Shown here one piece after another: positions 1 through 64,000 of a stretch of DNA of 64,000 nt. Position 1 is the stretch's first letter. Each line of letters begins with the position of its first letter. The position numbers and the translations under genes are program-made. Source of the DNA: Anaeramoeba ignava BMAN (Eukaryota; Protista; Anaeramoebae); assembly GCA_028826165.1 (NCBI GenBank), contig JAPDFW010000134.1, positions 1 to 64,000 on the forward strand. The letters run 5' to 3'. The notes beneath the pieces are model-generated. The model was not told the DNA's origin and ran no database searches. It saw nothing but the letters and a program-made list of their open reading frames with translations.

Positions 1-1792
1 TACTATTACTATTATTTCTATTATTGCTATTATTATCGTTTTTATGGTTTTCTTCTTGACTTTCGTTAGAATTATCTGAATTTTCTGGAGAACTTGATTT
101 TAAACCAGTTTTTCTACTTTCGGTTTGTATCTTTTTGACTTTTCTCATATAAAGAGTGTACATAATTTTTCAAGATTTGGTTGATCACTAGTTAAAGATC
201 TGAGTATTTGTTCTTTATCAGTTACAAGAGTTGTTAGATTTCCAACAATGGATTGATTAATTTTGTTTTCAGGAATTGGTTTAATAAATCTTTGTCTTAA
301 AATTGCATGAGGAGGATTATAATTTGTTGGGAAATTAGATCTAAACCATTCATTTTGTTTGATTTGTTCAATTGTGAATCGTTTATTAACATCTTTTTCA
401 AGTATTCCTTTTATTAATTCTTTTTTTGCTGGTGCTAAATTTTCTGGAATTGTATATTTTGCTTCTAAAACTTTCATTAAAACATCTTTTATTGATTCTC
501 CTTCAAATGGTAATCTTCCTACAAGAAAAACATATAAAATAACACCACAACTCCAAATATCCGATTTAACTCCATCATATTCATTTCCCTTTCAAATATT
601 AAATAATAAATATTAAATCAATATTAAATATTAAATCAATATTAAATATTAAATATTAAATATTAAATATTAAAAATTAAAATAAATATTAAATATTAAA
701 ATAAATATTAAATATTAAATTAAATATTAAATATTAAATTAAATATTAAATATTAAATTAAATATTAAATATTAAATTAAATATTAAATATTAAATCAAA
801 TATTAAATTAAATATTAAAATAAATATTAAATCAAATATTAAATATTAAATTAAATATTAAATATTAAATATTAGATATTAAATATTAAATATTAAAAAT
901 TAAATTAAATATTAAATATTAAATTAAATATTAAATATTAAAATTAAATCAATATTAAATATTAAAATAAATATTAAATCAAATATTAAATATTAAATTA
1001 AATATTAAATATTAAATTAAATATTAAATATTAAATATTAAATATTAAAATAAATATTAAATCAAATATTAAATATTAAATCAAATATTAAATATTAAAT
1101 TAAATATTAAATATTAAATATTAAATATTAAATATTAAATAATAAATTAAATATTAAATCAAATATTAAATATTAAATTAAATATTAAATATTAAATTAA
1201 TATTAAATCAATATTAAATATTAAATAATAAATATTAAATATTAAATATTAAATTAAATATTACTTCAATAACTTCAGGAGCAGCATAATGAGGTGAACC
1301 ACAAGAAGTTTCAAGTAATTGTCTCTCATTAATTAATCCAGCCATTCCAAAATCAGCAATTTTAATATTACCAAAAGAATCAAGAAGGATATTTTCAGGT
1401 TTTAAATCTCTATGACAAACAAGATGATTATGACAATATTCCAAAGCATAAATCAATTGTTGAAAGAAAATCAAAGATTGTTTTGTTGAGATAAATTCTT
1501 GGTTCACAAGAAAATCAAATAATTCACCACCAGGCATATATTCCATAACCATAAATAAATATTCATCTGACTCAAAAACATCAAATACTTTTAATACACT
1601 TGGATGATTTAATAATTTCAAAACTGCAATTTCTTTTTGTGCATTTATTCTTGCTTTTTCTGTTGCGAAAACTAACTTTTTTGGCATTATTTTAACTGCT
1701 ACTTGTTTTTCTGTTTCTGTATTAATTGCTAATTTTACTTTTCCTGTACTTCCTGTTCCTAAAGTTTGAAGTAATTTATAAGGTCCAATCAT
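1..1792 (-). CDS. BRSK/SAD/Gin4-like AMPK-related Ser/Thr kinase, copy 1 (3' end runs off window)
   Basis: Exon 1 1792-1265 has GTGSTGKVK, VAVK, HRDLKPEN, DFG and LETSCGSPHYAAPE. GT-AG intron 1264-589 joins APEVIE to GNEYDGVKSDIWSCGVILY. An apparent 1-nt deletion in a T-run near 166 (5 T vs 6 T in paralogs) breaks the frame. Confidence 0.9.
589..1264 (-). repeat. 676-nt intron filled with AATATTA/AAATT satellite
   Basis: Sense strand begins GTAATA and ends TTGAAAG; the interior is almost pure attaaat-type 5-7 nt units. Confidence 0.9.
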
Positions 1793-2262
1793 TGTTTTTA
1801 TTGTTTTTTTATTATTATTTTGTTTTTAATTTAGGGGTAAAATGTAAAAAGAAAAATTCAAAAAGAAAAATGATTTCAATCAAAAATTCTTTTTATTTAT
1901 CATTTTCTTTTTAAATAAAAGTTTTAATTAAAAACACACATAATTCTAATTTAAAAACAAAAACAATTAAAAACAAACAAACAAAAATTTTTCTTTTATT
2001 TATTTAAAAAGATCTTATTTTAAAAATAAAAGCAAAATTTAATTATTTATCTATTTTTAATTTTAAATTTCTTTTATATTTTAAAAATAAAAAAAAGAGT
2101 TTGGGGGTATTTATCCATTTTGTTATTTTTCTTTTTTAATTTTTTAATTTAAACAAAAAAGAAAAAGAAAAAGAAAAAGAAAAAGAAAAAGAAAAAGAGG
2201 ATTAAAATGAAAAAAGTTGATCAAAAAAAAAGCAAAAGCAAATTGAAAATTAAAAATTTAAG

Positions 2263-5200
2263 TTAAAAATTTGAAACTTTAATCAATGAATTGCAAAATT
2301 CAATAAATTCTTGAGCAGTTCCTCGTTTTGAAATTAAATAAACTTTAATTGGTTCGGTATTTAAAATTGGACATTTTTGGATTTTAATTCTAAATTTTGT
2401 TTTATTTAAATTTGCTTTAATTGTGAATATATTTGGATAAGCCCAATTAAAATTCAATTTTGTTAATCCTTCTTGGAAATTTCTCATAATTTCCATAATT
2501 GGTTGATTTATTGAAAAAGAAACGTAATAATTCTTTGCTAATTGTTCTGTTGGATTTTCAAGTATAACTTCTCCTCCTTGTTCAAATTTATTATCAAGAT
2601 GAAGTTTTTGATATTTTTTTCCTTCTTGAACTTCCATTTTTTTGGATTTTCTTTTGAAAACTTTGCCAAACCAACTTTTTTTGGTTGTTTTTGATTCTTT
2701 TTCTATATCAAAAGAAAGATCAAATTGTTCATTCTTCTTTTTTTTTTTGATAGACATTTTAACTATTTTTTAAAATTTAATTTTTTTAATAAATTAAATT
2801 GGATTAAATTTTTTATATTTAAAATTAATTACTTTTTTTCTCTTCTTGTTTTTTCTGTTTTTCTTGTAATTTCTTTTGTTTTTCTTCTTGTTTTTTTTGT
2901 TTTTCGAATTCCACTTTTTTTTGTTTTTCTTCTTTCTTTTTTTGTTTTTCTAATTCCACTTTTTTTTGTTTTTCTTCTTTTTGTTTTTGTTTTTCAGAAT
3001 TATCAGAAGAAGTTGATTTTGTAAAGCCAGTTGATTTTTCACTTAGTTTATCTGAATTTTCTTTTTGAGATTTTTCTAATTCTTTCTGAGATTTTTGTAA
3101 TCCAACTTTTTGCTTTTTTTCTTGTTTTTTTTGTTTTTCCAATTCTTCTTTCTTTTGTTTTTCTTGTTGTTTCTTTTGTTTTTCCAATTCTTTTTGAGAT
3201 TTATCCAATTCCACTTTTTTTTGTTTTTCTTCTTTCTTTTTTTGCTTTTCTAATTCTTCTTTTTTTTGTTTTTCTTCTTTTTGTTTTTGTTTTTCTTGTT
3301 TTTCTTCTTTTTTTTGTTCTTCTTTTTTTTGTTTTCAATTCCACTTTTTTTTGTTTTTCTTCTTTTTGTTTTTGTTGTTCTTCTAATTTCTTTTGCTTTT
3401 CTTGTTGTTTCTTTTGTTTTTCCAATTTTTTTTGAGATTTTTCCAATTCCACTTTTTTTTGCTTTTCTTCTTTTTGCTTTTGTTTTTCAGAATCATCAAA
3501 AGAAGTTGATTTTGAGAAATCACTTGATTTTTCACTTAGTTTATCTGAATTTTCTTTTTGAGAATCAACTTTTTGAGAATCAACTTTTTGAAAATCAACT
3601 TGTTGCTTTTCGGTTTTTTGAGATTTTTTGAGTTTTCTCATATAAAGAGTGTACATAATTTTTTCAAGATTTGGTTGTTCACTAATTAAAGATCTGAGAA
3701 TGTGTTGTTGATCAAAGCCAAGTGTTGATAGATTTCCAACAACAAATTCATTAATTTCGTTTTCAGGAACTGATTGAATGAGTTTTTTTCTTAAAATAGC
3801 TTGAGGAGGTTTATAATTTGTTGGGAAATTAGATCTAAACCATTCATTTTGTTTGATTTGTTCAATTGTAAATCGTTTATTAACATCCTTTTCAAGCATT
3901 CCTTTTATTAATTCTTTTTTTTCTGGTGATAAATTTTCTGGAATTGTATATTTTGCATCTACAACTTTCAATAAAACATCTTTTATTGATTCTCCATCAA
4001 ATGGTAATTTTCCTGTAAGTAAACCATATAAAATAACTCCACAACTCCAAATATCTGATTTAGTTCCATCATATTCAATTCCCTTTCAAATATTTAAATA
4101 TTAAATCAAATTAAATTAAATTAAATTAAATCAAATCAAATTAAATTAAATCAAATCAAATCAATATCAAATCAAATCAATATTAAATCAAATTAAATTA
4201 AATCAAATCATATTAAATCAAATTAAATCAAATTAAATCAAATTAAATCAAATTAAATTAAATCAAATTAAATCAAATTAAATCAAATTAAATCAAATTA
4301 AATCAAATCAAATCAAATTAAAATTAAATTAAATCAATATTAAATTAAATCAATATTAAATTAAATATTAAAATAAATATTAAATCAAATTAAATCAATA
4401 TTAAATCAATATTAAATCAATATTAAATATTAAATTAAATTAAATCAATATTAAATCAAAATTAAATCAAATTAAATCAAATTAAATTAAATCAAATCAA
4501 ATTAAATCAAATTAAATTAAATTAAATCAAATCAAATCAAATTAAATCAAATCAAATCAAATTAAATTAAATCAAATCAAATCAAATCAAATTAAATTAA
4601 ATTAAATTAAATCAAATTAAATCAAATCAAATCAAATTCAAATTAAATCAAATTAAATCAAATCAAATCAAATTAAATCAAATCAAATTAAATCAAATTA
4701 AATCAAATTAAATTAAATCAAATTAAATCAAATTAAAATTAAATTAAATCAAATTAAATCAAATCAAATCAAATTAAAATTAAATTAAATCAATATTAAA
4801 TTAAATCAATATTAAATTAAATATTAAAATAAATATTAAATCAAATTAAATCAAATTAAATCAATATTAAATCAAATTAAATCAAATTAAATCAAATTAA
4901 ATTAAATCAAATTAAATCAAATTAAATTAAATCAAATTAAATCAAATCAAATTAAATCAAATCAAATCAAATTAAATCAAATTAAATTAAATCAAATTAA
5001 ATTAAATCAAATCAAATTAAATTAAATCAAATCAAATCAATATCAAATCAAATCAATATTAAATCAAATTAAATTAAATCAAATCATATTAAATCAAATT
5101 AAATCAAATTAAATTAAATCAAATCAAATTAAATTAAATTAAATTAAATCAAATCAAATTAAATTAAATTAAATTAAATTAAATCAAATCAATATCAAAT

Positions 5201-6756
5201 CAAATCAAATTCAAATTAAATCAAATCAAATCAAATTAAATTAAATCAAATCAAATTAAATTCAAATTAAATCAAATCAAATCAAATTAAATTAAATCAA
5301 ATCAAATCAATATCAAATCAAATTAAATTAAATTAAATTAAATTAAATCAAATTAAATTCAAATTAAATCAAATTAAATTAAATCAAATCAAATCAATAT
5401 CAATTCAAATTAAATCAAATCAAATTAAATCAAATTAAATTAAATCAAATTAAATTAAATCAAATTAAATCAAATTAAATCAAATTAAATCAAATTAAAT
5501 ATTAAATTAAATCAAATCAATATCAAATCAAATTAAATTAAATTAAATCAAATTAAATCAAATTAAATTAAATCAAATTAAATTAAATCAAATTAAATTA
5601 AATCAAATCAATATTAAATCAAATTAAAATTAAATCAAATCAAATCAAATCAATATTACATTAAATTAAATTAAATCAAATCAAATCAAATTAAATCAAT
5701 ATCAAATTATATTAAATCAAATTAAATCAAATTATATTAAATATTAAATTAAATCAAATATTAAATTAAATCAAATCAATATCAAATTAAATCAAATTAA
5801 ATAAAATTAAATCAATATCAAATCAAATTATATTAAATCAAATTAAATCAAATTAAATCAAATTAAATCAAATCAAATCAAATCAAATTAAATTAAATCA
5901 AATCAAATTAAATTAAATCAAATCAATATCAAATCAAATTAAATTAAATTAAATCAAATATTAAATTAAATCAAATCAATATCAAATCAAATCAAATTAA
6001 ATTAAATTAAATCAAATTAAATCAAATTAAATTAAATCAAATTAAATTAAATCAAATTAAATCAAATATTAAATTAAATATTAAATTAAATCAAATCAAA
6101 TCAATATTACATTAAATTAAATTAAATCAAATCAAATTAAATCAATATTAAATAATAAATATTAAATTAAATCAATATTAAATCAATATTAAAATAAATA
6201 TTAAATCAAATATTAAATTAAATATTACTTCAATAACTTCAGGAGCAGCATAATGAGGTGAACCACAAGATGTTTCAAGTAAATGTCTTTCATTAATTAA
6301 TCCAGCCATTCCAAAATCAGCAATTTTAATATTACCAAAAGAATCAAGAAGAAGATTTTCAGGTTTTAAATCTCTATGACAAACAAGATGATTATGACAA
6401 TATTCTAAAGCATAAATCAATTGTTGAAAAATAATCAAAGATTGAGCTGATGAAATAAATTCTTGATTGCCGAGATAATCAAATAATTCGCCACCAGGCA
6501 TATATTCCATAACAATAAATAAATAATCATCTGACTCAAAAACATCAAATACTTTTAATACACTTGGATGATTTAATAACTTCAAAACTGCAATTTCTTT
6601 TTGTGCATTTATTCTTGCTTTTTCTGTTTCAAAAATTAATTGTTTTGGCATTATTTTGATTGCTACTTGTTTTTCTGTTTCTGTATTAATTGCTAATTTT
6701 ACTTTTCCTGTTGTTCCAGTTCCTAAAGTTTTAAGTAATTTATAAGGTCCAATCAT
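2263..6756 (-). CDS. BRSK/Gin4-like kinase, copy 2 (kinase, UBA-like segment, K/Q/E-rich linker, KA1-like C-terminus)
   Basis: Exons 6756-6229, 4082-2833 and 2762-2263; introns 6228-4083 and 2832-2763 are GT-AG and restore the frame. One apparent frameshift near 3330 in the low-complexity linker. The KA1 call is inference from family architecture. Confidence 0.88.
4083..6228 (-). repeat. 2146-nt intron filled with AAATC/AAATT pentamer satellite
   Basis: Plus strand is a continuous mix of aaatc/aaatt units between canonical splice sites. Confidence 0.9.
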
Positions 6757-6866
6757 TGTTTTTTTATTGTTTTTATTATTTAAAAAAAAATCCAAAAATT
6801 AAAAAAAAAATGAAAAAACAAAAATGAAAAAAAAAGCAAAAGCAAATTGAAAATTAAAAATTTAAA

Positions 6867-9800
6867 TTAAAAATTTGAAACTTTAATTAATGAATTGCAA
6901 AATTCAATAAATTCTTGAGCAGTTCCTCGTTTTGAAATTAAATAAACTTTAATTGGTTCAGTATTTCCTGATATAGAACATTGTTCAATTTTAATTCTAA
7001 ATTTTGTTTTATTTAAATTTGCTTTAATTGTGAATATATTTGGATAAGCCCAATTAAAATTAAGTTTTGTTAATCCTTCTTGAAAATTTCTCATAATTTC
7101 CATAATTGGTTGATTTATTGAAAAAGAAACGTAATAATTCTTTGCTAATTGTTCTGTTGGATTTTCAAGTATAACTTCTCCTCCTTGTTCAAATTTATTA
7201 TCAAGATGAAGTTTTTGATATTTTTTTCCTTCTTGAACTTCCATTTTTTTGGATTTTCTTTTGAAAACTTTGCCAAACCAATTTTTTTTGGTTGTTTTTG
7301 ATTCTTTTTCTATATCAAAAGAAAGATCAAATTGTTCATTCTTCTTTTTTTTTTTGATAGACATTTTAACTATTTTTAGAATTTAATTTTTTTAATAAAT
7401 TAAATTGGATTAAATTTTTTATATTTAAAATTAATTACTTTTTTTCTCTTCTTGTTTTTTCTGTTTTTCTTGTAATTTCTTTTGTTTTTCTTCTTGTTTT
7501 TTTTGTTTTTCGAATTCCACTTTTTTTTGCTTTTCTTCTTTCTTTTGTTTTTCAAATTCCACTTTTTTTTGTTTTTCTTCTTTTTGTTTTTGTTTTTCTT
7601 CTTCTTTTTTTTGTTTTTGTAATTCCATTTTTTTCTGTTTTTCTTCTTTTTTCTTTTGTTTTTTTGGATTATCTAAAGAAGTTGATCTTGTAAAATCACT
7701 TTGATTTTCACTTTGAGTTTCACTTTGTTTTTCACTTGGACTTTCATTTTGACTTTGACTTTCTTTTTGACTTTCTTTTTGACTTTGATTTTGACTTTGA
7801 CTTTCTTCTTCTTTGTGTAATTGTTGTGAAATATCAAAAGAACTTGATCTTTTGATACCAGTTGTTTTTCCACTTTGATTTTCTTGATCTTTTTTCTTTT
7901 GATATTGTTCTTCTTTTTTCTTCAATTTTTGTAATTTTTTTTGAGATTTATCTGATTCAATTTGTTTTTGTTTTTCTAGTTTTTGTTTCAATTTTTCCAA
8001 TTTTTTTTGAGATTTTTCTAATTCCACTTTTTTTTGCTTTTCTTGTTTTTGTTTTTGTTTTTCTTCTTTCTTTTTTTGTTTTTCTTCGTTTTTTTGAGAT
8101 TTTTCTGAATTATCTAAAGAAGTTGATCTTGTAAAATCGCCTGTTTTTTCACTTAGTTTTTCTGAGTTTTCTTCTTCTTTTTGGAATTTTTCTGAGGTAT
8201 CTAAAGAAGTTGATTTTGTAAAATCGCCTGTTTTTTCACTTAATTTTTCTGAGTTTTCTTGAGAAAATGTTTTTTGAGAATCAAGTTGTTTTTTCTTTTG
8301 CTTTTCTTCTTTTTTCTTTTGCTTTTCCAATTCTTTTTGAGATTTTTGTAATTCCACTTTTTTTTGCTTTTCTTCTTTTTTCTTTTGCTTTTCCAATTCT
8401 TTTTGAGATTTTTGTAATTCGGTTTGTTTTTGTTTTTCTTGTTTTTGTTTTTGTTGTTCTTCTAATTTCTTTTGTTGTTCTTCTTTTTTTTGAGATTTTT
8501 GTAATTCAGTTTGTTTTTGTTTTTCTTGTTTTTGTTTTTGTTGTTCTTCTAATTTCTTTTGTTGTTCTTCTTTCTTTTGAGATTTTTGTAATTCAGTTTG
8601 TTTTTGTTTTTCTTGTTTTTGTTTTTGTTGTTCTTCTAATTTCTTTTGTTGTTCTTCTTTTTTTTGAGATTTTTGTAATTCGGTTTGTTTTTGCTTTTCT
8701 TGTTTCTGTTTTTGTTGTTCTTCTAATTTCTTTTGTTGTTCTTCTTTTTTTTGAGATTTTTGTAATTCGGTTTGTTTTTGTTTTTCTTGTTTTTGTTTTT
8801 GTTGTTCTTCTAATTTCTTTTGTTGTTCTTCTAATTTCTTTTGTTGTTCTTCTTTCTTTTGAGATTTTTGTAATTCAGTTTGTTTTTGTTTTTCTAGTTT
8901 TTGTTTTTGTTGTTCTTCTAATTTCTTTTGTTGTTCTTCCTTCTTTTGAGATTTTTGTAATTCAGTTTGTTTTTGTTTTTCTTCCTTCTGTTTTTGTTTT
9001 TCTAGTTTTTTCTTTTGTTTTTCAGAATCATCAAAAGAAGTTGATCTTGAGAAATCACTTGATTTATCACTTAGTTTATCTGAATATTCTTGAGAAAATG
9101 TTTTTGGAGAATCAACTTGTTTCTTTTCAATTTTTTGAGTTTTTTTAAGTTTTTTCAAATAAAGAGTGTACATAATTTTTTCAAGATTTGGTTCATTTGA
9201 TCTCAAACATTTTGTAATATGTTTTTCATCATTTCCAAGAGTTGTTAAATTTTCAACAATTTGTTGATTAATTTTGTTTTTTGGAATTGGTTTAATAAAT
9301 CTTTGTCTTAAAATTGCTTGAGGAGGTTTGTAATTTGCTGGGAAATTAGATCTAAACCATTCATTTTGTTTGATTTGTTCAATTGTGAATCGTTTATTAA
9401 CATCTTTTTCAAGCATTCCTTTTATTAATTCTTTTTCTGCTAGTGATAAATTTTCTGGAATTGTATAATTTGCATCTACAACTTTCAATAAAACATCTTT
9501 TATTGATTCTCCTTCAAATGGTAATCTTCCTGCAAGTAAAACATATAAAATAACTCCACAACTCCAAATATCTGATTTAACTCCATCATATTCAATTCCC
9601 TTTCAAATAATCAATAATCAATAATCAATAATTAATAATTAATAATAAATAATAAATAATTAATAATCAATAATTAATAATTAATAATCAATAATCAATA
9701 ATCAATAATCAATAATTAATAATCAATAATCAATAATCAATAATTAATAATCAATAATAAATAATAAATAATAAATAATTAATAATTAATAATCAATAAT

Positions 9801-12004
9801 TAATAATCAATAATCAATAATTAATAATTAATAATAAATAATTAATAATCAATAATTAATAATTAATAATTAATAATTAATAATTAATAATTAATAATTA
9901 ATAATTAATAATTAATAATCAATAATAATAATCAATAATCAATAATCAATAATTAATAATTAATAATTAATTAATTGTATTAATAATTAATAATCAACAA
10001 TCATGTCAATCAATCAATCAATAATCAGCCAATAAATTAATAAATAATCAATAATAATAATAAATAAATAATTGTAATAATAATTAATAATTTAATTAAT
10101 AATTAATAATTACCAATAATAATCAATAATCAATAATCAATCAATAATTAATAATTAATAATCAATAATCAATAATCAATAATAATCAATAATTAATAAT
10201 TAATAATTAATAAATAATTAATAATTAATTAATAATTGTAATTAATAATAATAATCAATAATAAATAATAAATAATCAATCATCAATAAATAATAAATAG
10301 CCAAATAACAAATAATCAATAATCAATAATCAGCCAATCAATAATCAATAATTTAATTGTAATAAATAATAATAATTAATATTATTAATAATTAATAATT
10401 AATAAATAATAATAAATAATCAATAATCAATAAATAACAACTGTGTCAATAATTAATAATCAATAATAAATAAATAATCAATAATCAATAATAAATAATA
10501 AATAATCAATAATCAATAATGTAATAACCAATAATCACTACCAATTAATTGTAATCACCGTCAATAATTAATAATTAATAATTCAATAATTAATAATTAA
10601 TAATTAATAATCAATAATAATCAATCAATCAATAATTAATAATTAATAATTAATAATTAATAATAATCAATAATCAATAATTAATAATTAATAATCAATA
10701 ATCAATAATCAATAATTAATAATCAATAATAATTAATAATTAATAATTAATAATCAATAATTAATAATTAATAATTAATAATAAATAATTAATAATTAAT
10801 AACAATCAATAATCAATAATTAACAATTAATAATAATAATAAATAATCAATAATCAATAATCAGCCAATCAATAATCAATAATTAATAATTAATAATTAA
10901 TAATTAAATAATCAATAATTAATAATTAATAATAATTAATAATTAATAATTAAAATAATAATAATTAATAATTAATAATAATAAATAATCAATCAATAAT
11001 TAATAATCAATAATCAATAATTAATAATAAATAATAAATAATTAATAATAAATAATAAATAATTAATAATTAATAATTAATAATAAATAATCAATAATCA
11101 ATAATCAATAATCAATAATAAATAATTAATAATTAATAATTAATAATTAATAATCAATAATCAATAATTAATAATTAATAATTAATAATAAATAATTAAT
11201 AATTAATAATTAATAATTAATAATTAATAATAAATAATCAATAATAAATAATTAATAATAAATAATCAATAATAAATAATAAATAATCAATAATTAATAA
11301 TAAATAATAAATAATTAATAATTAATAATTAATAATTAATAATAAATAATCAATAATTAATAATCAATAATCAATAATTAATAATTAATAATCAATAATC
11401 AATAATTAATAATCAATAATTAATAATAAATAATTAATAATCAATAATTAATAATTAATAATAAATTAAATATTACTTCAATAACTTCAGGAGCAGCATA
11501 ATGAGGTGAACCACAAGATGTTTCAAGTAATTGTCTTTCATTAATTAATCCAGCCATTCCAAAATCAGCAATTTTAATATTACCAAAAGAATCAAGAAGA
11601 AGATTTTCAGGTTTTAAATCTCTATGACAAACAAGATGATTATGACAATATTCTAAAGCATAAATCAATTGTTGAAAAATAATCAAAGATTGAGCTGATG
11701 AGATAAATTCTTGATTCACAAGAAAATCAAATAATTCACCACCAGGCATATATTCCATAACAATAAATAAATAATCATCTGACTCAAAAACATCAAATAC
11801 TTTTAATACACTTGGATGATTTAATAACTTCAAAACTGCAATTTCTTTTTGTGCATTTATTCTTGCTTTTTCTGTTTCAAAAATTAATTGTTTTGACATT
11901 ATTTTGATTGCTACTTGTTTTTCAGTTTCTGTATTAATTGCTAATTTTACTTTTCCTGTTGCTCCAGTTCCTAAAGTTTTAAGTAATTTATAAGGTCCAA
12001 TCAT
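6867..12004 (-). CDS. BRSK/Gin4-like kinase, copy 3, with greatly expanded K/Q/E linker
   Basis: Exons 12004-11477, 9599-7439 and 7369-6867; GT-AG introns at the same positions as copy 2; frame intact. Confidence 0.9.
8330..9000 (-). repeat. Coding minisatellite (unit of about 29 aa, QKSQKKEEQQKKLEEQQKQKQEKQKQTEL) in kinase copy 3
   Basis: Near-exact repeats visible in the 7431..9488 ORF translation. Confidence 0.85.
9600..11476 (-). repeat. 1877-nt intron filled with AATAATT/AATAATC heptamer satellite
   Basis: Plus strand aataatt/aataatc/aataata units between GTAATA donor and TTGAAAG acceptor. Confidence 0.9.
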
Positions 12005-24086: not shown

Positions 24087-24152
24087 TTGTAGAAAAAAAA
24101 TGAAAAAAATGAAAAATGGAAAATTATTTTTTTCATTTTTTACTTTTCAAAA
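24087..24152. promoter_or_regulatory. 66-bp bidirectional promoter with TCATTTT initiator-like motifs on both strands
   Basis: Divergent ATGs at 24086 (-) and 24153 (+); aaaatga motifs facing left and ttcattttt facing right. Confidence 0.55.
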
Positions 24153-25934: not shown

Positions 25935-26075
25935 AATTAAAATTAAAATTAAAATTAAAATTAAAATTAAAATTAAAATTAAAATTAAAATTAAAATTAA
26001 AATTAAAATTAAAATTAAAATTAAAATTAAAATTAAAATTAAAATTAAAATTAAAATCAAAATTAAAATTAAAAT
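25935..26075 (+). repeat. TAAAAT hexamer array starting at the stop codon of copy A
   Basis: CAA AAT TAA AAT TAA AAT ... continues for about 140 nt. Confidence 0.9.
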
Positions 26076-26113
26076 TCCAAAATTATTTTTTTTCATTTTT
26101 TTTCTTTTTAAAA

Positions 26114-37870: not shown

Positions 37871-37892
37871 ATTGGATTTTAAATTTTAATTT

Positions 37893-49960: not shown

Positions 49961-52900
49961 TCAAAAATCAATTAAATTTAAACTTGTTAAACTTGGAGCT
50001 AATTGACGTTTTAATTCTCTGAACATTTTTGTTAATTTTGAATGCAAAGGACGAAATTCATCAGAAACAAGAACATTATGTAACTTTAATCCTTCTTCAA
50101 CAACTTCTTGTTGTTTTTTCAAAGCAAGTTTTAATCGAACAACTAAATGTTCATCATTAGGACTTTCAAGTAAATATTCATCAACAAAAAAAGCTTGTTG
50201 ATATTTCAAAACACCTCCATTAACAGCAGCATCAATTACTCCATTTAATGACATTGTAAGTGGATTAAAGTTTTCATTTTGATGAGTTTTATAGTAAGAA
50301 ATCTTGTTAATCAATTCAATGTTTTTGTTTTCTGTTGTATTAACTGCATTTTGAATAGGAGTTAAAATTTTGATTTTCTTTTCAACTGAACGTAATCTTC
50401 TTCTTACGTTTGGAAATGGTTCTTCTAAAATTAAATATTCATTTCTTAACCATAAATCTTTAAACTCATTTTTGAGTGATTTATCTTTTCTAAAAGGTTT
50501 TGAATAAAGAAAAACATTAATATTTGTATTTTTTCCTGTTTTGAATAACTTGTTGAGGAATTTTATGATTAAATGGAGGAGATTCATCATTTAACTAAAT
50601 AAATTAATATTCATTTTAATATTAAATTAAAAATTCAAATTCAAATTCAAAATTTAATTTGTTTACTTCATCCATTGATGATGGTGTTAATGCTGCAACT
50701 TGAATATACATTCCTTCTCCTTCTCTTTGTTCTTGAGATGGATCATCTGTTCCAATAATTGAACCTGGATATTTCAATTTAATTTTCTCAATAAATTCAG
50801 ATACTCTTTCCAATAATTCGCCTTTATAAACAAATTCGCTATCCTTCAAATCAATATACTTATCATCATCAAAACCCTTTCCATAATATCCAACTCTAAA
50901 ATAAGAGGGATAGACTCTGCTATCATTAATTAAATTACGAAATAATTCCAATTCTTTTCTTAAAGATTGCTGCAAATTAAAGTAATCAAATTTTGTGAAT
51001 TCAAAATAACTTGAAAGTTCTCTATTATATTTAATTGCAGTTTCCCAAGATTTTCCTTGATTCAAACAATCAACAGCAAGTTTAATGATTTTCTGTTTTC
51101 GTTCTGTTGATATTTCTCTTGGAAATCCAAATTCTTTGGGTTCTATTTTTTTCGAACTCCATGACAATAATTCTGAATATAATAAAAGTGTATTTCCTGA
51201 TTCAATACTATTATTAAATTGTTGATTTAAATTGTATAACATTCTTATATATCTTGGAATCATAAAATATTGTTTTTTCTTTCTTAAAAATTCTATTAAT
51301 CGGATTATTGCTTCTGATTTTTCATCTTCCAATCCTTGCAAATCCTGATATTTTCTTAATAAGAATATTTGTGCAATAATTTCTTTTAATTGATCAAGGA
51401 AAAATTTTCCCTAAATTATATGAAATTTATATTAAAAATTAAAAATTAAAAATTGATTTGAATTGAAATTAAAATTGAATTTTCTACTTTTTTCTCAAGT
51501 TCAAAGTTATTTTGAAATTTATCAATCATATAAGGAAAAAATATCTTTTCAAACTTATTATAATTTCCTTTCTTCATTGCTTTATCGACAATTCCCAAAG
51601 TATTTTGTTCAACAGTAGCAAAATCACCAGTTTTTGAGAATTCAAAAACAATCGTTTCATAATACAATTCAAGACCAATTCTTTGCAATCTGGAATTATC
51701 CAACAAAATCAAGGATAGAAATGGGTCAATTAAATCAGGCATTAAATCCAAACGATTATCACCACAAATCTTCCACATTCTTCGAACAATATTTGCGGCT
51801 TCTTGTCGCATATCTCCTTTACTATCCAAAATATTGAGTTGAGTTGTATAATTTGGTAAAAGTTCGATTTGAAGATCATTTGCATTAATAAAATTCACGC
51901 AAAGCAAGAAGAATTTCAACCAAAGATCCTTTTGGTAATTTTCGTCTGTTTGTGCTAATAAAATATTGATGGATCTTCGGATGATCTTCAATATTATCGA
52001 ATAATGAAATAGCTGTATTTCTTGTGCATCTTTTGGATATATTTTGTTTTTGCGAGATTCTGTCAAAAATTCAAACAATTCAAAAAGAGAGGATTTTGGT
52101 GATCTTCTTGAATAAGTTTCTGCAATCGCTCCAAGTAAATAATCCAAACTTGAGAATTCCAAAAAATGAAACATTGAGAGTAAAATTGAAACAATTTCTT
52201 CTTTTAAATCATTTTTTTCCTTGATAAGATCTATTTCTTGCAGTTTCTGTTCCTCTCCCATTTCTTTTGCTTGAGAAATTTCATTGAGAAAGGAATTATT
52301 TTCTCGGAATGCCAACATTAACAAAGATGGAAATTGTGCAAGTCCAGTAAGTTGTATTTTGAGAATTTCTTCCTTTTCTAAAAATCCTATCATAATTTCA
52401 TTTGGCATTTGGTTTGTTTCTTGGTTTTGTGCATCTATTTGTTGTTCTGATAAATTTTGTATTTTCACTAAAATATTCCTTAAAATTGTGGTTGATTTTG
52501 CAATGTTTTCCTCACTTGCCAAAATATTTTCTTCCACTCTTTTAAGTAATAACGGCAATATAACACATTGTGATTTTGCTGAATCCATAAACACTCCATT
52601 TGAAAATTCAATTAAAAAATTCATTTTTTCAGCATCAAGTTCTTTTCTTCCTTCAGAAATACTTTGGAATATTGAGTCCATAAACGCAATAATCATTGTG
52701 ATATCAAATACTTTTGTCAATTCAACAGTAATTGGATATAATTTCTTCAATATTAACACTTGTGCTCCATTAATCCACTCAGGTTTTAAACGTTGAAACA
52801 AGCGGTTAATTGTTTCCAATAGCTGAATCATATCCTGATCAAATTTCATATCCTGAACCGCTTTTGGATCAATTTTGATTTCAAGCATTCTTGAGTTGAT

Positions 52901-55900
52901 TATCAATTCAAACAAATATCCCATTTCTTTGATTGCTTTTCTCATTTGAACTCCTGTTTCTTCGTTATCATAGTTTTCGATATAACCCAAAAGTTGTTGG
53001 ATAAACCATGTGTAAATTTTGGATAAATATTTCTTCTTGTTTTCGTCTTGTTGGATAAAGAACCTATCATTAATATAATCTTTTAAAATGATTTTGAAAC
53101 TTTGTAATTGTGATTCAATTGATGTGATAATTTCAATAAATCCATCAAAAATGGTTTTTTGTATTTTTTCTCCATATTCAGAAACAATTTCAAAAAGATT
53201 ATCAAAAATTATTCCAATAAACTATAAAACAAAGAAATAAAATAAAATTTATATATATATATATATTTTTTTGTGTTTTGAATAATTCAAAATCAAAATA
53301 CTGGGAGTATTTCATTAAGATTAACCGATGTGATGTTATTCATTATATTTGAAAATGATTTAAGATCATTCATATTGATTAATTGTCTCCAATTTAAAAA
53401 AGATATTAATTCAGGAATTTGTGGAATTATTGTTGAACATAAATTGTAATTCACATTTAGTGTATCTTTTGTTGGTGATATTTTGGTTTTGGAATTTGCT
53501 GATATTGTTTGTTTTAAATATATTTTTGGATCTAATTTTGCTTGATGTTTATAAACTGTTAAATTTTCATCATTTTGATTTAATATAACACCATTTTCAT
53601 AAATGTATTTATAACAATATCCAAATATTTTTTCCGGTTTTTCTTTTAAAAAAATTTTCAAATTTAAATTAAAATTAAAATTAAAATTAAATCAAATTTT
53701 AGATTTAAATCTAATACTTGGTTCATTTGGACAACTTAAAAGAGTGAAAAATAAATGAGCTTCTCTTAATAAATGCAAAGGTAAATTGATTCTAATAAAA
53801 GAATTATATATCGGATCTAATCTATGATAATAAATAACACTTTCCCATTTTGAAGTTGGTTTTAATTGATCTCCAGCAAATATTCCATTTGGAATAACAT
53901 CTCCTTTTTCATTTCTTATTTCCATTTCAATCTTAATATTTTTGGTTTTGGAAGTGTGGAAAGCACCTGATTTTATTGTTAGAAATAAATCATTAAAAAA
54001 TTGTGAAGGTAAAACAAGTTGAGGAAGTTTCATGTTTCTTGTTTGAGTTGAAATATTTCGATCAGGAAATAAATCGAGTTCTTTTTTTGGTTGAAGTGTT
54101 AATTTAATTGTTAAATATTCATTATCATGAAATACTCTTGGATCTTCTTCAGAAATTACTAAAATATAATTAAATATAAATATATTTAAAATATATATTT
54201 TTTTTTGATTAATTTTGGATTGGATTTATTACATTCATTCATAATTGGAAAAAAAACTTCTTGTTGTGGAACAAAAATTTTCATAACAAGTTCTTGTGTT
54301 CTGTTTTTATATCCTGTTAATAAATTACTTGAAAATTGTAATGAACTTAATCCAACTGGTCTTTGATATTTTGGAGTTTTTTCTTCAAATTTTCTTTTAA
54401 TTTTTTTTTCTTTAAAAACCATATCACCAATTCTAAATATTTTACAGATTAATTGATGGTTATCGATATCCTGATGCATAATATCCTTTTTTTTTTTGAA
54501 TTTAAATATATTTTGGAATTTAAATATATTTTTTGAATAAATATATTTTAAAATTTAAATATTTTTGGAATTTAAATATTTTAAATATTTTTGGATTTAA
54601 ATATATTTTTAAATAAATATTTTGGATTTAAATATATTTTTGAATTTAAATATATTTTTGGATTTATTTTTGAATTTAAATATATTTTTGGATTTAAATA
54701 TATTTTTGGATTTAAATATTTTTAAAATATTTTTGGATTTAAATATTTTTGGAATTAAATATTTAAATATTTTTGGAATTTAAATATATTTTTGGAATTT
54801 AAATATATTTTGAATTTAAATATATTTTTGAATTTAAATATATTTTTGAATTTAAATATATTTTTGAATTTAAATATATTTTTTTGGAATTTAAATATAT
54901 TTTTGAATTTAAATATATTTTTGAATTTAAATATATTTTTGAATTTAAATATATTTTGAATTTAAATATTTTTTGAAATAAATATTTTTTGGAATTTAAA
55001 TATATATTTTGGAATTTTTATTTTTGGAATTTAAATATTTTTGAATTTAAACATATTTTTGAATTTAAATATTTTTGAATTTAAATATATTTTTAAATAA
55101 ATATTTTGGATTTAAATATATTTTTTGAATTTAAATAAATATTTTGGATTTAAATATATTTTTGAATTTAAATATATTTTTGGATTTAAATATTTTTTAA
55201 TACTTGAAATTCAACAAATTTTGGAGAATCTGGATCTGTAATTGGTTTATGATTTTCATCAAGATATAATGGATATTCTTCAGTTATAAAGACTTCTTTC
55301 TCTGTATTATATAGAGAAAATAATAATATTAATGGTTCTTTAATTTGAATTAAAACTGACTATTGTTTTTTTGAATAAAATCAATTAAATGAGAAATGAT
55401 TTAAAATTATAAATTATATTTTTTACTTTGAATTCAAGAAATAATGAATAAGAAAGTTCTTGTTCTTCTTTTGAAATTTCTTTTGGAATTTCATCCAAAT
55501 CTTCATCTTGTATTTCCTCTTTTTGTTTTTCTTGTTCTTTTTGTTTTTTTTCTTGAGCTTTTTTATAAAGTTGATAATAATCAAGAAAATTAGTATTATC
55601 ATCTTTAGCAATCCAACCTTTTGGAGTTCTAAGTGTATTTGGGATTTTTAAATATTTATTTTCTTCTTCTATTGTTTTGATAACTTCATTTTTCAAAGCA
55701 ATTAAATTTTCCTATTTATATTTATATTTATATTATTTTAAATAATTTAGATTTATATTTATATTTATATTATTTTAAAGATTTATATTTAGATTATATT
55801 TATATTTATATTATTTTAAATATTTAATTTAGATTTATATTTAGATTACTTTGGATAAATGTGGTTTTAACATTGTTTTTCTTAATCCTAAAAGATTCTT

Positions 55901-56393
55901 AATTTGTGGAATAATAGCATTTACTTCTTCTATTTTCTTTTCTTTAAAAAGATGAAACATTATAAGTCTCCATTCTTGAACAACACTTTCAATTTCTAAA
56001 ATAATTGGATCAACTTTTAAATAAAAATGGAATTCAGATTTCATAACTTCAACAATTGAATCAATTTCTTCTTCAATAACTTCAATAAAATTAACAGGAA
56101 ATAAACCAACTCTTCCTGAATTTATACATTTACCTCTAAACCAACCTAAACATTGTTCTTTAATTTCAACATAATCACCAATTTGAAGTGGTAATTGATT
56201 TAATGATTCAGGAACAAAATGATAAAGTGCTTATTTTATTTTTATTTTTATTTTTGTTTTATTTTTTAATTTTGGATTTTTGAAATAATTTTTTTAATAA
56301 ATTATTTTTTTTTTTAATTTTTGGAAAATTTTTTTCATTTTAATTCCTTAACTTACAAACCCCATATTTTTCATATTTCCTCCAATCACCCAT
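49961..56393 (-). CDS. DOCK-family Rac GEF (SH3, C2/DHR-1, DHR-2; DOCK1/2-like)
   Basis: Starts MGDWRKYEKYGV|SLY; SH3 LQIGDYVEIKEQCLGWFRG; C2 NDLFLTI...WESVIYYH...HLFFT; DHR-2 YFRVGYYGKGF and LNGVIDAAVNGG. Nine GT-AG introns (56356-56230, 55849-55712, 55426-55360, 55203-54486, 54232-54159, 53717-53643, 53301-53222, 51487-51411, 50666-50595); one extra A near 50530. Confidence 0.9.
54500..55198 (-). repeat. About 18-nt satellite (TTTTTGAATTTAAATATA) in the 718-nt DOCK intron 4
   Basis: Direct inspection. Confidence 0.88.
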
Positions 56394-56603: not shown

Positions 56604-59600
56604 TTAATCTTTTTCATTAAAAATTTCTTCTTTTTCTTTTTTTAAAAATTCTTTTGAAAATGTAAATAATTCTTTATATTTTTCTGATAAATCGATAAAA
56701 GAATGAAAAGAATTTGGATTTGGAATTGGGATTTTAGTTTCAAATTCGAAATCATTAATAATTGGAGAAATGAGATGATTATGAATTAAATTTAATTCTT
56801 GAATTATTTTTTTTTCTGATTCATTTTCATTTGAAAGTTCATTGATTCTTTTTTGAATTTCTTGAACAAAAAGTATTTGAATTGAATTAAATTTTGTATC
56901 TGAAAAAAGGAAATCAAAAAACCATTTATTATTTGGAATTTCCTTTTGATTTTGAATAATTTCATCATTTTGTTTTTTGGAAATCATTTTAATAATATTA
57001 AGAATAATTTTGATTTGGTTAATTTCATTGCTTTGAATTGAAACAATTTTAGGAATTAATTTTTTAATTAAACAAGTAATTATGATTTGAAGAAACCAAA
57101 AAAGATTTTTAGACAGATTTTCTGCAATTGTTTTCTTAATAAAAATGTAATAAATTTGAATCAAAGCTTCAAAAAGTCTGTTTTCTTTTATATTATTTAA
57201 AGCGGATAAAAACTATTTATATTTTTTTATATTTATAATAAAAATTAATTGTTGCTTTTTTAAATAAAAAGAAATCAAATTACTTGTTCTGTATTAACAA
57301 CATGGGCTGAATATTGATATTGAAGTAAAGAAATTTGATTTAAATCAAATGAGTTTTGAAGAATTTCTTGATAAATTAATTGTGCAATTTTTGAAGAGCA
57401 TAATTGATTTTTTTCAGAATTACAAATTGGACAATTCACTCCTTTTTCACACCATGGAAATAATTGAATATTTTTCTGAATATTTTTTTCTATTATTTGT
57501 TGAATATTTTCATTTGGATATTGTTTAGAAAAAACTTCTTGAGCAATAAAAAAATCCATTAATTGATTCTTTTGATTGTAATATGAGTATGCAATCAATC
57601 CCAATAAAGAAGGGTCTTTTTTTTCATCAACCAATTCAACCGATAAATTTTTTTGTATTTTGTTTTTCGATTTATGAAATTTTTCTTTGAAATTTCCCCA
57701 AATTTGGTTTTCTTTTTGTAAATGAAAATTTTGATTGTTATTCGAGATTTCGCTGAAAAGAAGTTTGTTTTCGTTTGCAATTTCATTGGTTAATGGAATT
57801 GGAACCAAATCAGAGAAATTCATCATGTCATCCAAAGCGTTTGAATTTGTGTTTTCAAATTGAGTTGATGGATGTCTATTTTGCAAATAGATTAAACAAT
57901 AACAGTATGCACCATCTGTTTTAAATGAAGATTTAATCACAATATCTTCTGTTACTTCTTCAACAATATCATCTTGAAATTTAATCCATTTCGAATTCAA
58001 ATTGTTATATATAAAAACATAATAATCATTTTCATCATTATTGTTATTTTTTTCTTGCACAAAAATAGCATAAATTGAATAGTTTGTTTCTTGTTTTTCA
58101 TTTCTGATATTTTTTGAAACGAATTTGTCAAGATTTATTGTTTTTTCCAAATGAAAATTATCAGAAATTTTTTGGTTTGTAAAATTCTTATCCAATTCAA
58201 AAAGTAAAATTTGAGGTAAAAAAATAAATTCTTTTTCTAAATTATCAGATTTTTGAGTATTTGCAAATTGCTCCAAACTTGAATAAATAGATTGATAAGA
58301 TGGATTAAATGGAATTGAATTGAAAATGGATTCTTTTACTTGATTTTTTTCTTCTGTAATTTTTCCTGTAAATATTTTTGCGAATTCACCAATAATTTCA
58401 GTTTTAATATTTGGTTCAAATGAATCAATATCTGGAAGTGTTATATCAAAAGGATCGATAATTTCCTTTTTTGAAGAAAAGAAATCTTGTGCAATTTCAG
58501 AAGCTTCATCACATTTACGAATAAAAAAAGAGAGAAAATCTGAAATTTGAGTTTTTTGGAAATCTGAAAAAGGTTGATTTAAAAGATTAATTGCTGATAA
58601 AATTGGTTTTGAAGAAATGAATTTTGATTGAGAATGAGAAAGATAAGCGAAGAATTTTTGGATTGTGAAAAAAACTAGAATAAAATTCAATTAAAATTCA
58701 ATTAAAATTCAATTAAAATTCAATTAAAATTCAATTAAAATTCAATTAAAATTCAATTAAAATTCAATTAAAATTCAATTAAAATTCAATTAAAATTCAA
58801 TTAAAATTCAATTAAAATTCAAATAGAATTCAAATAAAATTCAATTAAAATTCAATTAAAATTCAATTAAAATTCAATTAAAATTCAATTAAAATTTAAT
58901 TAAAATTCAATTAAAATTCAATTAAAATTCAATTAAAATTCAATTAAAATTCAATTAAAATTCAATTAAAATTCAATTAAAATTCAATTAAAATTCAATT
59001 AAAATTCAAAAATTAAAATTTAAATTAAAATTCAATTAAAATTCAATTAAAATTCAATTAAAATTCAATTAAAATTCAATTAAAATTCAATTAAAATTCA
59101 ATTAAAATTTAATTAAAATTCAATTAAAATTCAATTAAAATTCAAATAAATTAAAATTCAATTAAAATTCAATTAAAATTCAATTAAAATTTAATTAAAA
59201 TTCAATTAAAATTCAATTAAAATTCAATTAAAATTCAATTAAAATTCAATTAAAATTCAATTAAAATTCAATTAAAATTCAATTAAAATTCAATTAAAAT
59301 TTAATTAAAATTTAATTAGAATTCAATTAAAATTCAATTAAAATTCAATTAAAATTCAATTAAAATTCAATTAAAATTTAATTAAAATTCAATTAAAATT
59401 CAATTAAAATACAATTAAAATTCAATTAAAATTCAATTAAAATTCAATTAAAATTCAATTAAAATTCAATTAAAATTAAAATTTCTTTTGATTGTTTTTT
59501 ACAAAAAAGAATATCTATTTTTTCTTCAGATAAAATTCCATTATTTTGATTTTCTATATTTTTTAATTGATTTTCTTCAATTTGAAAATGAAAAATCTGT

Positions 59601-60675
59601 TCTAAAAATTGAGGAATAAAATTTAAAGATTGTAGAAAAGAGTTAAAATAAGATGTTTGATTTAATTTCAATAATCCAATAGGAAGGTCTTTTTCTCTAA
59701 TTTTTTCATTTGATTTTAAGTTTTGAATTTGATAAGAAAAATCAAGAAATGATTCTCTATCTCTTTGTTTTTTTTTAAATTGATCAATTTGAAAATTTTG
59801 AAATGATTGTAAAGATTGATTTATTGCAAGAATATAATCAGAATCAAAATCATCATCTTTTTTATTAATTTGGTTATTTTCTAAAAAATGATCTGGTCTT
59901 TCAAAAACATTTGCTTCTATTTTGTTTTTTTTTTTGAATTAAAATTAAAATTAAAATTAAAATTAAAATTAAAATTAAAATTAAAATTAAAATTAAAATT
60001 AAAATTAAAATTAAAATTAAAATTAAAATTAAAATTAAAATTAAAATTATAATTCATTTTAGAAATTAAAATTAAAATTAAAATTAAAATTAATATTAAA
60101 ATTAAAATTATTAAAATTAAAATTAAAATTAAAATTAAAATTAAAATTAAAATTAAAATTAAAATTAAAATTAAAATTAAAATTAAAATTAAAATTAAAA
60201 TTAAAATTAAAATTAAAATAAATTAAAATTAAAATTAAAATTAAAATTAAAATTAAAATTAAAATTAAAAATTAAAATTAAAATTAAAATAAAAATTAAA
60301 ATTAAAATTAAAATTCATTTTAGAAATTAAAATTATAATTAAAATTTAAATTAAAATTAATATTAAAATTAAAATTAATATTAAAATTAAATTAAAATTA
60401 AAATTAAAATTAAAATTAAAATTAATTAAAATTTATGCACCAAATTGTGACTTCTCTTGATTATCAACAAGATTTAAACCTAAACCATCAAATAAATCTG
60501 TACCATCAAAACCAGGAATATCATCATTATAATTATCTTTTTTTTCTTCTTCTAAAAATTGTAAAATTTTCTCATCATTAAAAGAATAAATTTCAATAGC
60601 TCTTAAAACACTTTCTTCTGGAAAACCAAGAGAAACAAAATATTTAACTTTTTCATTTTGAATTTTTTGATTCAT
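56604..60675 (-). CDS. USP25/28-like ubiquitin-specific protease homolog (UBA-like N-terminus, peptidase C19 fold), predicted inactive
   Basis: Exons 60675-60441, 59916-59503, 58674-57284 and 57212-56604. UBA-like FVSLGFPEESVLRAI; Cys box PIGLLKLNQTSYFNSFLQSL; LPQILLFEL; His box YSIYAIFVQ...NDYYVFI...WIKFQDDIV. Confidence 0.78.
58680..59480 (-). repeat. 11-nt satellite AAAATTCAATT in the 828-nt USP intron 2
   Basis: Highly homogeneous tandem array. Confidence 0.92.
59938..60432 (-). repeat. AAAATT satellite in the 524-nt USP intron 1
   Basis: Direct inspection; sense donor is GTGCAT at 60440. Confidence 0.88.
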
Positions 60676-60792: not shown

Positions 60793-61588
60793 ATGAATTA
60801 TTCACCAAATGAATTTATTGGAACAATAATTATAAATAAAAAGTTAAAATTTCATCATGAATGTTTTATTGGAGATCAAGAAAAAGTGAATGAAATGATT
60901 TCTTCTGATCAAACAGTGTTAAATAATTATGATGATAATGGACTTGCTCCACTTCATCTTGCAGTTCATGGAAATCATTTAAATATAATTGAAATTCTTT
61001 TAAAAAATGGTGCTGATCCAAATATTCGTAAAAAAAATGGAGATCAAACTCCTTTACATTTTGCTGCTTTTTTTGATCGTGTTGAAATTGCTGATTTGTT
61101 GCTTAAATTTAAAGCTAATGCTGATTTAGTTGATGAAAAAGGATGGTGAGTTTTAGTTTATTTTGTTTTTTTTTTTTGAATTAAAAAATTCAAATCTAAT
61201 TTAAAATTTAAAATTTAAAAGGAAATTGCAAGCAAATAATAATTTTAAAAATAAATTAATAAATAAATTAATAAATAATTTAATAAATAAATTAATAAAT
61301 AAATTTATAAATAAATTAATAAACAAATTAATAAATAAATTAATAAATAAATTAATAAATAAATTAATAAATAAATTAATAAATAAATTAATAAATAAAT
61401 TAATAAATAAATTAATTAATAAATAAATTAATAAATAAATTAATAAATAAATTAATAAATAAATAAATAAATTAATAAATAAATTAATAAATAAATTAAT
61501 AAATAAATAAATTAATAAATAAATTAATAAATAAATTAATAAATAACAAATTAATAAATAAATTAATAAATAAATTAATAAAACAAAT

Positions 61589-61619
<31 letters not shown>

Positions 61620-64000
61620 AAAAATAAATAAATAAATTAATAAATAAATTAATAAATAAATTAATAAACAAATAAATTAATAAATAAATTAATATAAATA
61701 AATTAATAAATAAATTAATAAATAAATTAATAAATAAATTAATAAATAAATTAATAAATAAATTAATAAATAAATTAATAAACAATTTAATAAACAATTT
61801 AATAAATAAATTAATAAATAATTAAATAAATTAATAAACAAATTAATAAATAAATAAATAAATAAATTAATAAATAAATTAATAAATAAATTAATAAATA
61901 AATTAATAAATAAATTTATAAATAAATTAATAAATTAATTAATAAATAATTTAATAAATAAATAAATAAATTAATAAATAAATTAATAAATAAATTAATA
62001 AATAAATTAATAAATAAATTTAAATAAATTAATAAATAAATTAATAAATAAATTAATAAACAAATTAATAAATAAATTAATAAATAAATTAATAAACAAA
62101 TTAATAAACAAAATAATAAATAAATTAATAAATAAATTAATAAATAAATTAATAAACAAATTAATAAATAAATTAATAAACAAATTAATAAATAAATTAA
62201 TAAATAAATTAATAAATAAATTAATAAACAAATTAATAAACAAATTTAATAAATAAATAAATAAATAAAATAATAAAAAATTTAATAAATAAATTAATAA
62301 ATAAATTAATAAATAAATTAATAAATAAATTAATAAATAAATTAATAAATAAATTAATAAATAAATTTAATAAATAAATTAATAAACAAATAAATAAATA
62401 AATTAATAAATAAATTAATAAATAAATTAATAAATAAATTAATAAATAATTTAATAAATAAATTTAATAAAATAATTTAATAAATAAATTAATAAATAAA
62501 TTAATAAATAAATTAATAAATTAAAATTAAATAAATAAATTAATAAATAAATTAATAAATAAATTAATAAATAAATTAATAAACAAATTAATAAATAATT
62601 TAATAAATAAATTAATAAATAAATAAATAAACAAATTAATAAACAAATTAATAAATAAATTAATAAATAAATTAATAAATAAAATAATAAACAAATTAAT
62701 AAATAATTTAATAAATAAATTAATAAATAAATTAATAAATAAATTAATAAATAAATTAATAAATAAATAAATAAATAAATTAATAAATAATTTAATAAAT
62801 AATTTAATAAACAAATTAATAAATGAATAAACAATTTAATAAATAAATTAATAAATAAATTAAATAAACAAATTAATAAACAAATTAATAAATAAATAAA
62901 TTAATAAATTAATAAATAAATTAAATTAATAAATAAATTAATAAATAAATTAATAAATAAATAAATTAATAAATAAATTAATAAATAAATTAATAAATAA
63001 ATTAATAAATAAATTAATAAATAAATTAATAAATAAATTAATAAACAAATTAATAAATAATTTAATAAATAAATTAATAAATAAATTAATAAATAAATTA
63101 ATAAATAAATTAATAAATAAATAAATAAATTAATAAATAAATTAATAAATAAATTAATAAACAAATTAATAAATAAATTAATAAATAAATAATAAATAAA
63201 TTAATAAATAAATAAATAAATAAATTAATAAATAAATAAATAAATAAATTAATAAATAAATAAATAAATAAATAAATAAATTTAATAAATTAATAAATAA
63301 ATAAATAAATTAATAAATAAATTAATAAATAAATAAATAAATAATTTAATAAATAAATAAATAAATAATTTAATAAATAATTTAATAAATAAATTAATAA
63401 ACAATTTAATAAACAATTTAATAAACAAATTAATAAATAATTAGGAATCCTTTGCATTGGGCTGCTTATAAAAATTCACACAAAATAACGAATTTATTTT
63501 TAAACTATGATAAATCTTTAATAGACAAACGAGACAATTTAAAAAACAAACCACTTCACATATCAGCATTTGCAGGAAGTGTTGAATCAGGACAAAAAAT
63601 ATTAACAATTTCACACAAAAAATCTCACAATAAAGACGGATATTCACCAATTCATATTGCAGCACTTTCAGGAAAAACAGAATTCATAGAAATACTAATG
63701 AACAAAGGATATGATATCAATTCACTTAGTTCTAATAAAGAAACACCACTTCATATTGCTTGTTTATTTGAAAAAATTGAAGTTGTTCAGTTTTTATTGA
63801 AAAATTCTTGTAAAATTGATCTGAAGGATTCAAAAGGAGCAACTCCTCTTTGTTATTCTCAAATGAAAAATAATCTTGAAATTTCACGTTTATTAATTAC
63901 TCATGGAGCACGTAGTGAACTTCATTTTTTTGCAAGAGAAGGAGAGTTTTCTCAATTAAGTTCTTTATTATCAAAAATGAATTTAAATTTAAATTGTAGG
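60793..64000 (+). CDS. Ankyrin-repeat protein (runs off window)
   Basis: Exon 1 60793-61145 (GLAPLHLAV, QTPLHFAA); intron 61146-63444; exon 2 from 63445 (W|NPLHWAAY, YSPIHIAA, ETPLHIAC). Confidence 0.88.
61250..63440 (+). repeat. 12-nt satellite AATAAATAAATT in the 2299-nt ankyrin intron
   Basis: Direct inspection. Confidence 0.92.

Follow-up and report, generated by a model that had tools for sequence, protein, structure and literature searches.

Differences in intron size are usually attributed to transposons and deletion bias. In the AT-rich non-coding DNA of Plasmodium and Dictyostelium, slippage repeats are accompanied by matching low-complexity tracts in proteins, and these repeats are mostly built from units of 1-3 nt that occupy part of short introns. 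In Drosophila, the Y-loop introns of kl-3 and kl-5 are transcribed and consist of simple AT-rich satellites, (AATAT)n among them (Fingerhut et al. 2019, PMC6508621). On avian dot chromosomes, local imperfect tandem expansions termed 'sequence stuttering' fill introns, and copies of exon edges are found in 3.4% of chicken dot-chromosome introns (Hron et al. 2026, PMC12954441). Here we describe the long, array-filled introns found in the first 64,000 nucleotides of contig JAPDFW010000134.1 of Anaeramoeba ignava BMAN, an anaerobic amoeba with extremely AT-rich DNA (assembly GCA_028826165.1; positions 1 to 64,000 of the forward strand, hereafter the window). The assembly comprises 42,843,398 bases in 147 contigs (PMC11550330 Table S1), and its introns, at 8.14% GC, make up 22.5% of the genome (Jerlstrom-Hultqvist et al. 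2024, PMC11550330). The genome paper treats only the length skew and AT richness of these introns; searches of its text and supplement found nothing on intronic satellites or tandem repeats, and literature searches returned no description of such introns for Anaeramoeba or another protist. The long introns are very probably genuine spliceosomal introns filled by AT-rich micro- and minisatellites born at each locus, through slippage-type local amplification filtered by splicing. The feature is real, appears genome-wide and is undescribed in the A. ignava genome paper, and its mechanism is probably an ordinary one.

Nine genes of the window contain 32 rebuilt GT-AG introns, 14 of them long (307-3460 nt) and 18 short (63-138 nt). 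The initial annotation, made from the letters of the window alone, had the number and size range of the long class right; it listed 20 short introns and 34 in total, of which 18 and 32 were found here. Removal of the introns restores an open frame in all 32 cases, in keeping with U2-type splicing, and the tested flanking exons encode ordinary Pfam domains (PH, MORN/SAM, DOCK, UCH and ankyrin). Each of the 14 long introns holds one dominant tandem array as detected by Tandem Repeats Finder (TRF). A wider sample of 279 kb, taken from the surroundings of kinase and MutS loci and hence a non-random part of the genome, was searched with a self-trained hidden Markov model (HMM) that gave 149 confident introns and recovered exactly all 32 window introns, the window genes being part of its training set. 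Since TRF over-calls AT-only DNA, in which its coverage alone is a weak test and shuffled sequence reaches 40-50%, best-lag identity was used as the measure of periodicity. All 43 sampled introns of at least 300 nt are arrays, with 93% of their bases under TRF, and their best-lag identity of 0.77 compares with 0.50-0.51 in dinucleotide-resampled controls, 42 of the 43 introns exceeding 40 of 40 controls. Thus, long introns are almost wholly one tandem array, as had been noted at first reading.

The arrays begin a median of 17 nt past the donor and end a median of 11 nt before the acceptor, an almost end-to-end filling that bears directly on whether long introns could be decayed transposons or transposon-seeded satellites. 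Searches of the genome gave 17 reverse-transcriptase matches, which speak for such an origin, against 0 matches to the rve integrase (DNA transposases were not searched for), and no transposon was found in the sampled long introns. The GC content of these introns (1-14%) and the tracing of units to local intron stubs, described below, also argue against transposons, which are a highly improbable source of the arrays.

The 149 sampled introns have a mean of 327 and a median of 104 nt, near the published mean of 300 and median of 102 nt from the same assembly (n=32,108, mode 76, maximum 4168 nt; PMC11550330 Table S3A, Note 1). Two log-normal components fit the lengths best (BIC, Bayesian information criterion, 320 vs 443), one of them sharp, at 79 nt (55%), the other broad, at ~437 nt (45%). 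The bimodality first described is retained, but the true empty gap seen between 138 and 307 nt was a small-sample effect, as the trough between the two classes is shallow and 17 of the 149 introns measure 140-299 nt. Minimal introns (60-110 nt) are ~90% AT and often contain a few imperfect repeats, introns as a whole are ~92% AT, and repeat content grows with intron length. Introns of at least 300 nt account for ~29% of all introns by number and for about three quarters of their total bases, which, extrapolated roughly from this non-random sample, corresponds to ~9,000 long introns and 17% of genome DNA. The term 'gigantism' is nevertheless too strong, as the longest sampled intron measures 3460 nt and the published maximum is 4168 nt, while gigantic introns of the Y-loop type extend over hundreds of kb to Mb.

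The local birth of the arrays is illustrated by BRSK-like kinases. One phase-0 intron position is common to 17 BRSK paralogs, three arranged in tandem at window 1-12004 and 14 located elsewhere in the genome. At this position introns range from 67 to 2146 nt, with periods of 5 to ~144 nt and differing units, and on the paralog tree long introns are scattered among short ones. The three window copies, all on the minus strand, have introns of 676 nt (copy 1, 589-1264; 7/19-nt units from AATATTT by TRF), 2146 nt (copy 2, 4083-6228; 5-nt AATTT/GATTT) and 1877 nt (copy 3, 9600-11476; 7-nt AATTATT/GATTATT). The junctions of the first two are identical in the NCBI models KAJ5067087.1, which equals the spliced product of copy 1, and KAJ5067088.1. 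The exons of the three copies are 93-97% identical and their introns begin with the same 14 bases and end with the same 9, yet the arrays between these ends differ. The amplified words of copy 1 (7-mer) and copy 2 (5-mer) both occur in the shared 5' intron stub, and short BRSK introns of 107 and 116 nt already carry small arrays. The finding of different arrays, grown from shared stub words, in near-identical paralogs supports the local amplification independent of transposable elements that the initial annotation had put forward. The window kinase genes form a mosaic of one another at synonymous sites, through gene conversion or mis-polishing, and apparent frameshifts occur in their long K/E/Q-rich repeat regions. 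A further BRSK intron (locus L037, 3350-4215) is a ~144-nt minisatellite in which the 3' part of the intron itself occurs about six times, and only the last of these copies ends in AG at that point; this intron is the sole long one left uncovered by TRF at periods of up to 60 nt.

The BRSK intron position is also shared by the sister species A. flamelloides, where the introns measure 2295/2296 and ~947/947 nt in two strains. These homologous introns are ~98% identical between strains, have 20-24% GC and are without arrays, and array cover is 0-1% in 105 kb of A. flamelloides DNA against 31% in the window. Since the position is shared and the A. flamelloides introns are without arrays, the intron is old and the arrays are specific to the A. 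ignava lineage. Paralogs and sister species also inform on a possible function of the arrays, in tuning the time of transcription or splicing or in binding a protein. A functional role would fit with the estimated 17% of the genome kept as intron array despite short spacers, and with the strand biases of the arrays, in which AG is low and C exceeds G in 29 introns vs 14. However, neither unit nor length is conserved among near-identical paralogs, the sister species lacks arrays and similar arrays lie between genes. Function is thus a decidedly improbable explanation, and the expansion of the arrays is most likely non-adaptive.

Units are private only in part. Comparison of 10-mers places the 43 long introns in 26 clusters, the largest of which has 14 members on an AAAATT/AAAATC lattice. 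This hexamer cluster, one third of the long introns, rules out fully private units, although neighbouring introns do differ in their units as first noted. Nor are arrays limited to introns, as the early reading had implied, since strong arrays in the 279-kb sample cover ~63% of the bases in introns, 33% of those between genes and 3% of those in coding sequence. The array process is genome-wide, intron-enriched and present on all contigs sampled. Two arrays of the window outside introns serve as comparators, a 659-nt intergenic array with a 5-nt unit, flanked by convergent genes (37220-37878), and a hexamer array of 994 nt (41592-42585, minus strand) that the HMM calls coding, within a TUTase-family gene, where it encodes a poly N/E/Q tract with an apparent internal frameshift. 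The spacers between the first eleven window genes (66-473 nt) bear out the compactness ascribed to this genome.

Several side observations concern these arrays. Coding satellites of up to ~1 kb (window 41025-41357, 41592-42585, 39567-39752 and 26893-27001) form N/E/Q-rich tracts in TUTase-family, BTB and RCC1-BTB-like genes. A period of 6 is found in 15 of 17 intergenic arrays of the sample (e.g. window 25927-26076, 27998-28225 and 33676-33857) vs 12 of 43 intron arrays, three of the intergenic ones being non-independent copies within a tandem gene family. Six tandem intronless genes at 24152-36033, RCC1-BTB-like from a reading of their translations only, have hexamer arrays and a single unrelated gene between them, and several show assembly frameshifts.

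A mechanism can be proposed from these data. Amplification would start from minimal AT-rich introns with few imperfect repeats, such as those observed, in which replication slippage may amplify one local word. Unequal exchange or gene conversion may add the occasional larger block duplication, some of which are present in long introns. If gains and losses scale with array length, a sharp peak at minimal size and a broad log-scale hump capped at ~4 kb would result. As the paralogs show, each locus drifts to its own mix of units while variants spread inside the array by turnover. An array would be tolerated by splicing as long as its sense strand avoids AG and the signals at both intron ends stay intact, a pattern that is seen and for which splicing is the suggested cause. 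The process would act genome-wide, with introns as its best-tolerated site.

A number of observations weigh against this interpretation. Support from RNA consists of one EukProt transcriptome-derived protein (Trinity c21421_g4_i1), identical at 270 of 270 residues to a spliced fourth paralog across the homologous BRSK junction; this sister paralog has a 353-nt intron and lies outside the set of window introns. The deficit of sense-strand AG (65 vs 250 CT; AG rarer than CT in 23 introns vs 5, p=0.0009) is partly built in, as the gene finder places intron ends at AG. The cause of array instability was not found, and homologs of MutS and MutL exist in the genome. Arrays are noisier in the middle than at their ends. 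Finally, the locus occurs a second time in the assembly: the start of another contig (C60, 1-13800) is a reverse complement of the window from 1 to ~25,500, and on it the four long arrays are all shorter (~1100 vs 3460, 189 vs 775, 446 vs 2146 and ~500 vs 676 nt). Since the C60 arrays are shorter and C60 may be under-polished, the exact lengths of the window arrays are uncertain.

The last two points are shared by the possibility that the assembly inflated the arrays, in that ABruijn, Racon and Nanopolish lengthened them and the true introns measure a few hundred bases as on C60. The assembly was built from R9.4/9.5 nanopore reads with ABruijn 1.0, Racon and the Nanopolish of 2017, and absolute intron lengths rest on it. 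Against inflation, the C60 tip is the poorer copy, its identity dropping to 70-75% at the end with many single-base indels in exons, and even there the introns are still long arrays. One short intron, that at 16963-17025, is in fact longer on C60 (78 vs 63 nt). An exact internal duplication longer than in the Markov control occurs in only 2 of the 14 window arrays, and wholesale block copying by the assembler is therefore not the pattern. The agreement of the sample with published statistics also argues against inflation, though both come from the same assembly. Taken together, inflation is unlikely, and locus-born arrays remain the preferred explanation.

The C60 arrays are made of the same words as those of the window in other order and length; three differ 3-5-fold from their window copies, and the order of units near the exons differs as well. 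C60 has one kinase paralog fewer, the 5' end of copy 3 being joined to the intron and 3' end of copy 2. Substitutions between C60 and window kinase exons are almost all synonymous, and most are shared with other paralogs. With only three third-position changes private to C60, they fall short of establishing a second haplotype. On C60 the single-copy PH exon 1 has zero substitutions and several one-base indels. The balance is slightly in favour of C60 being a second haplotype with hypervariable arrays rather than an under-polished nanopore copy.

Loss of mismatch repair, which might drive array expansion and to which the initial annotation had pointed, was addressed through the gene inventory. 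Units of 5-12 nt lie within the range of loop repair, which would suit such a loss, and none of the six MutS homologs has MSH3 as its best PDB match. The inventory speaks against the loss, as homologs with long open frames were found for MSH2, two MSH6-like proteins, three further MutS and four MutL, and Msh2-6 are listed for Anaeramoeba (PMC10710043 Fig. 5). The same paper notes inteins in several Msh genes and the absence of polymerase zeta. The inteins may reduce repair activity. Weighing both sides, mismatch-repair loss is an improbable driver of the arrays. In three of the MutS homologs (loci L048, L052 and L053) an intein-like insert interrupts the Walker A motif, as reported in PMC10710043.

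The remaining long introns of the window lie in five genes. In the PH-domain gene (plus strand), a 3460-nt intron (13313-16772) opens with ~195 nt of non-repeat sequence, including an internal AG at 13481, followed by a 6-nt TAAATA array, and a 775-nt intron (17534-18308) holds an AAAATT array interspersed with variant blocks. Two short introns of the same gene (16821-16884, 64 nt, and 16963-17025, 63 nt) lie between them, the second already containing 5-nt units. The MORN/SAM gene (plus strand) has five long introns, of 307 nt (44224-44530; AAAATT-type 6-mer), 1096 nt (44823-45918; 12-nt unit, with an exact internal duplication of 158 nt at an offset of 408), 734 nt (46286-47019; a 12-nt unit unlike that of 44823-45918), 539 nt (47373-47911; 5/10-nt units) and 432 nt (48101-48532; ~24-25-nt unit), and interleaved with them are six short ones of 85, 97, 63, 72, 89 and 72 nt (44674-48045). 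The MORN-SAM model stops at ~49262, and a U-box-like frame continues in another phase at 49237-49797, which could reflect a frameshift, a missed intron or a separate gene. In the DOCK gene (minus strand), an intron of 718 nt with a ~18-nt unit (54486-55203; 733 nt with the alternative in-frame acceptor at 54471) is accompanied by eight short introns of 67-138 nt (50595-56356). The ubiquitin hydrolase gene (minus strand) contains introns of 828 nt (58675-59502; 11-nt unit, 95% matches) and 524 nt (59917-60440; AATTTT, the reverse complement of the AAAATT hexamer), in addition to a short one of 71 nt (57213-57283). The ankyrin gene (plus strand) carries a 2299-nt intron with a 12-nt unit and an internal AG at 61221 (61146-63444). 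A short intron of 108 nt (36363-36470, plus strand) belongs to a gene that is exosome-subunit-like from its translation only. Five introns share a layout in which an AG-ended 5' piece resembling a short intron leads into a handful of exon-like bases that lack a GT donor, and then into the array (window 13313-13511 and 61146-61240; L036:3916-4946; L037:3258-4215; L046:2863-3338). In the PH-gene intron the 5' piece is followed by a 30-nt in-frame stretch; such pieces may be an alternative acceptor, a skipped mini-exon or chance.

Among known systems, the Drosophila Y-loop introns resemble those of A. ignava in being transcribed introns of simple AT-rich satellite. They differ in reaching megabase scale in about six heterochromatic genes, with satellites shared along the chromosome and a dedicated expression program, while the A. 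ignava arrays measure 0.3-4 kb and, by extrapolation, lie in thousands of ordinary genes. In contrast to the repeats of Plasmodium and Dictyostelium, the A. ignava arrays nearly fill almost every long intron. The similarity to avian stuttering goes further. In both, a strictly local imperfect tandem expansion lies between conserved exons (here in 43 of 43 introns of at least 300 nt), homologous introns differ in unit and length (here among the 17 BRSK paralogs), and gene-dense regions poor in interspersed repeats are involved, with intergenic DNA also affected. However, avian stuttering is GC-rich and linked to G-quadruplexes and high recombination, a GC association absent from introns that are ~92% AT; it is confined to ten small chromosomes, whereas the A. 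ignava pattern is found on all contigs sampled; and its blocks span tens to hundreds of bases against units of mostly 5-25 nt. Avian introns also carry occasional exon copies. None was detected in the 43 A. ignava introns, where the match to own exons (7.9 nt) is close to that to other exons (7.7 nt), a sample too small to exclude a rate of 3%.

The data show neither a new function nor new machinery. It is possible, though with somewhat less than an even chance, that A. ignava undergoes active genome-wide 'AT stuttering', with thousands of hypervariable intron arrays (~17% of the genome by extrapolation), several-fold changes in length between haplotypes of near-identical exons and a full set of mismatch-repair genes. 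If so, intron stuttering would need neither GC richness nor G-quadruplexes, and would be a third way for introns to grow, besides weak deletion bias and the insertion of transposons. In the culturable and transposon-poor A. ignava, about three quarters of intron bases appear to come from locus-born arrays; introns of the sister species are longer and have none. The two species thereby offer a natural contrast, with thousands of replicate loci for the study of satellite birth, turnover and the splicing filter, and A. ignava tests the proposal that the avian process depends on GC-rich DNA. The A. ignava arrays are closest to avian stuttering, yet are set beside it rather than assigned to it as a member.

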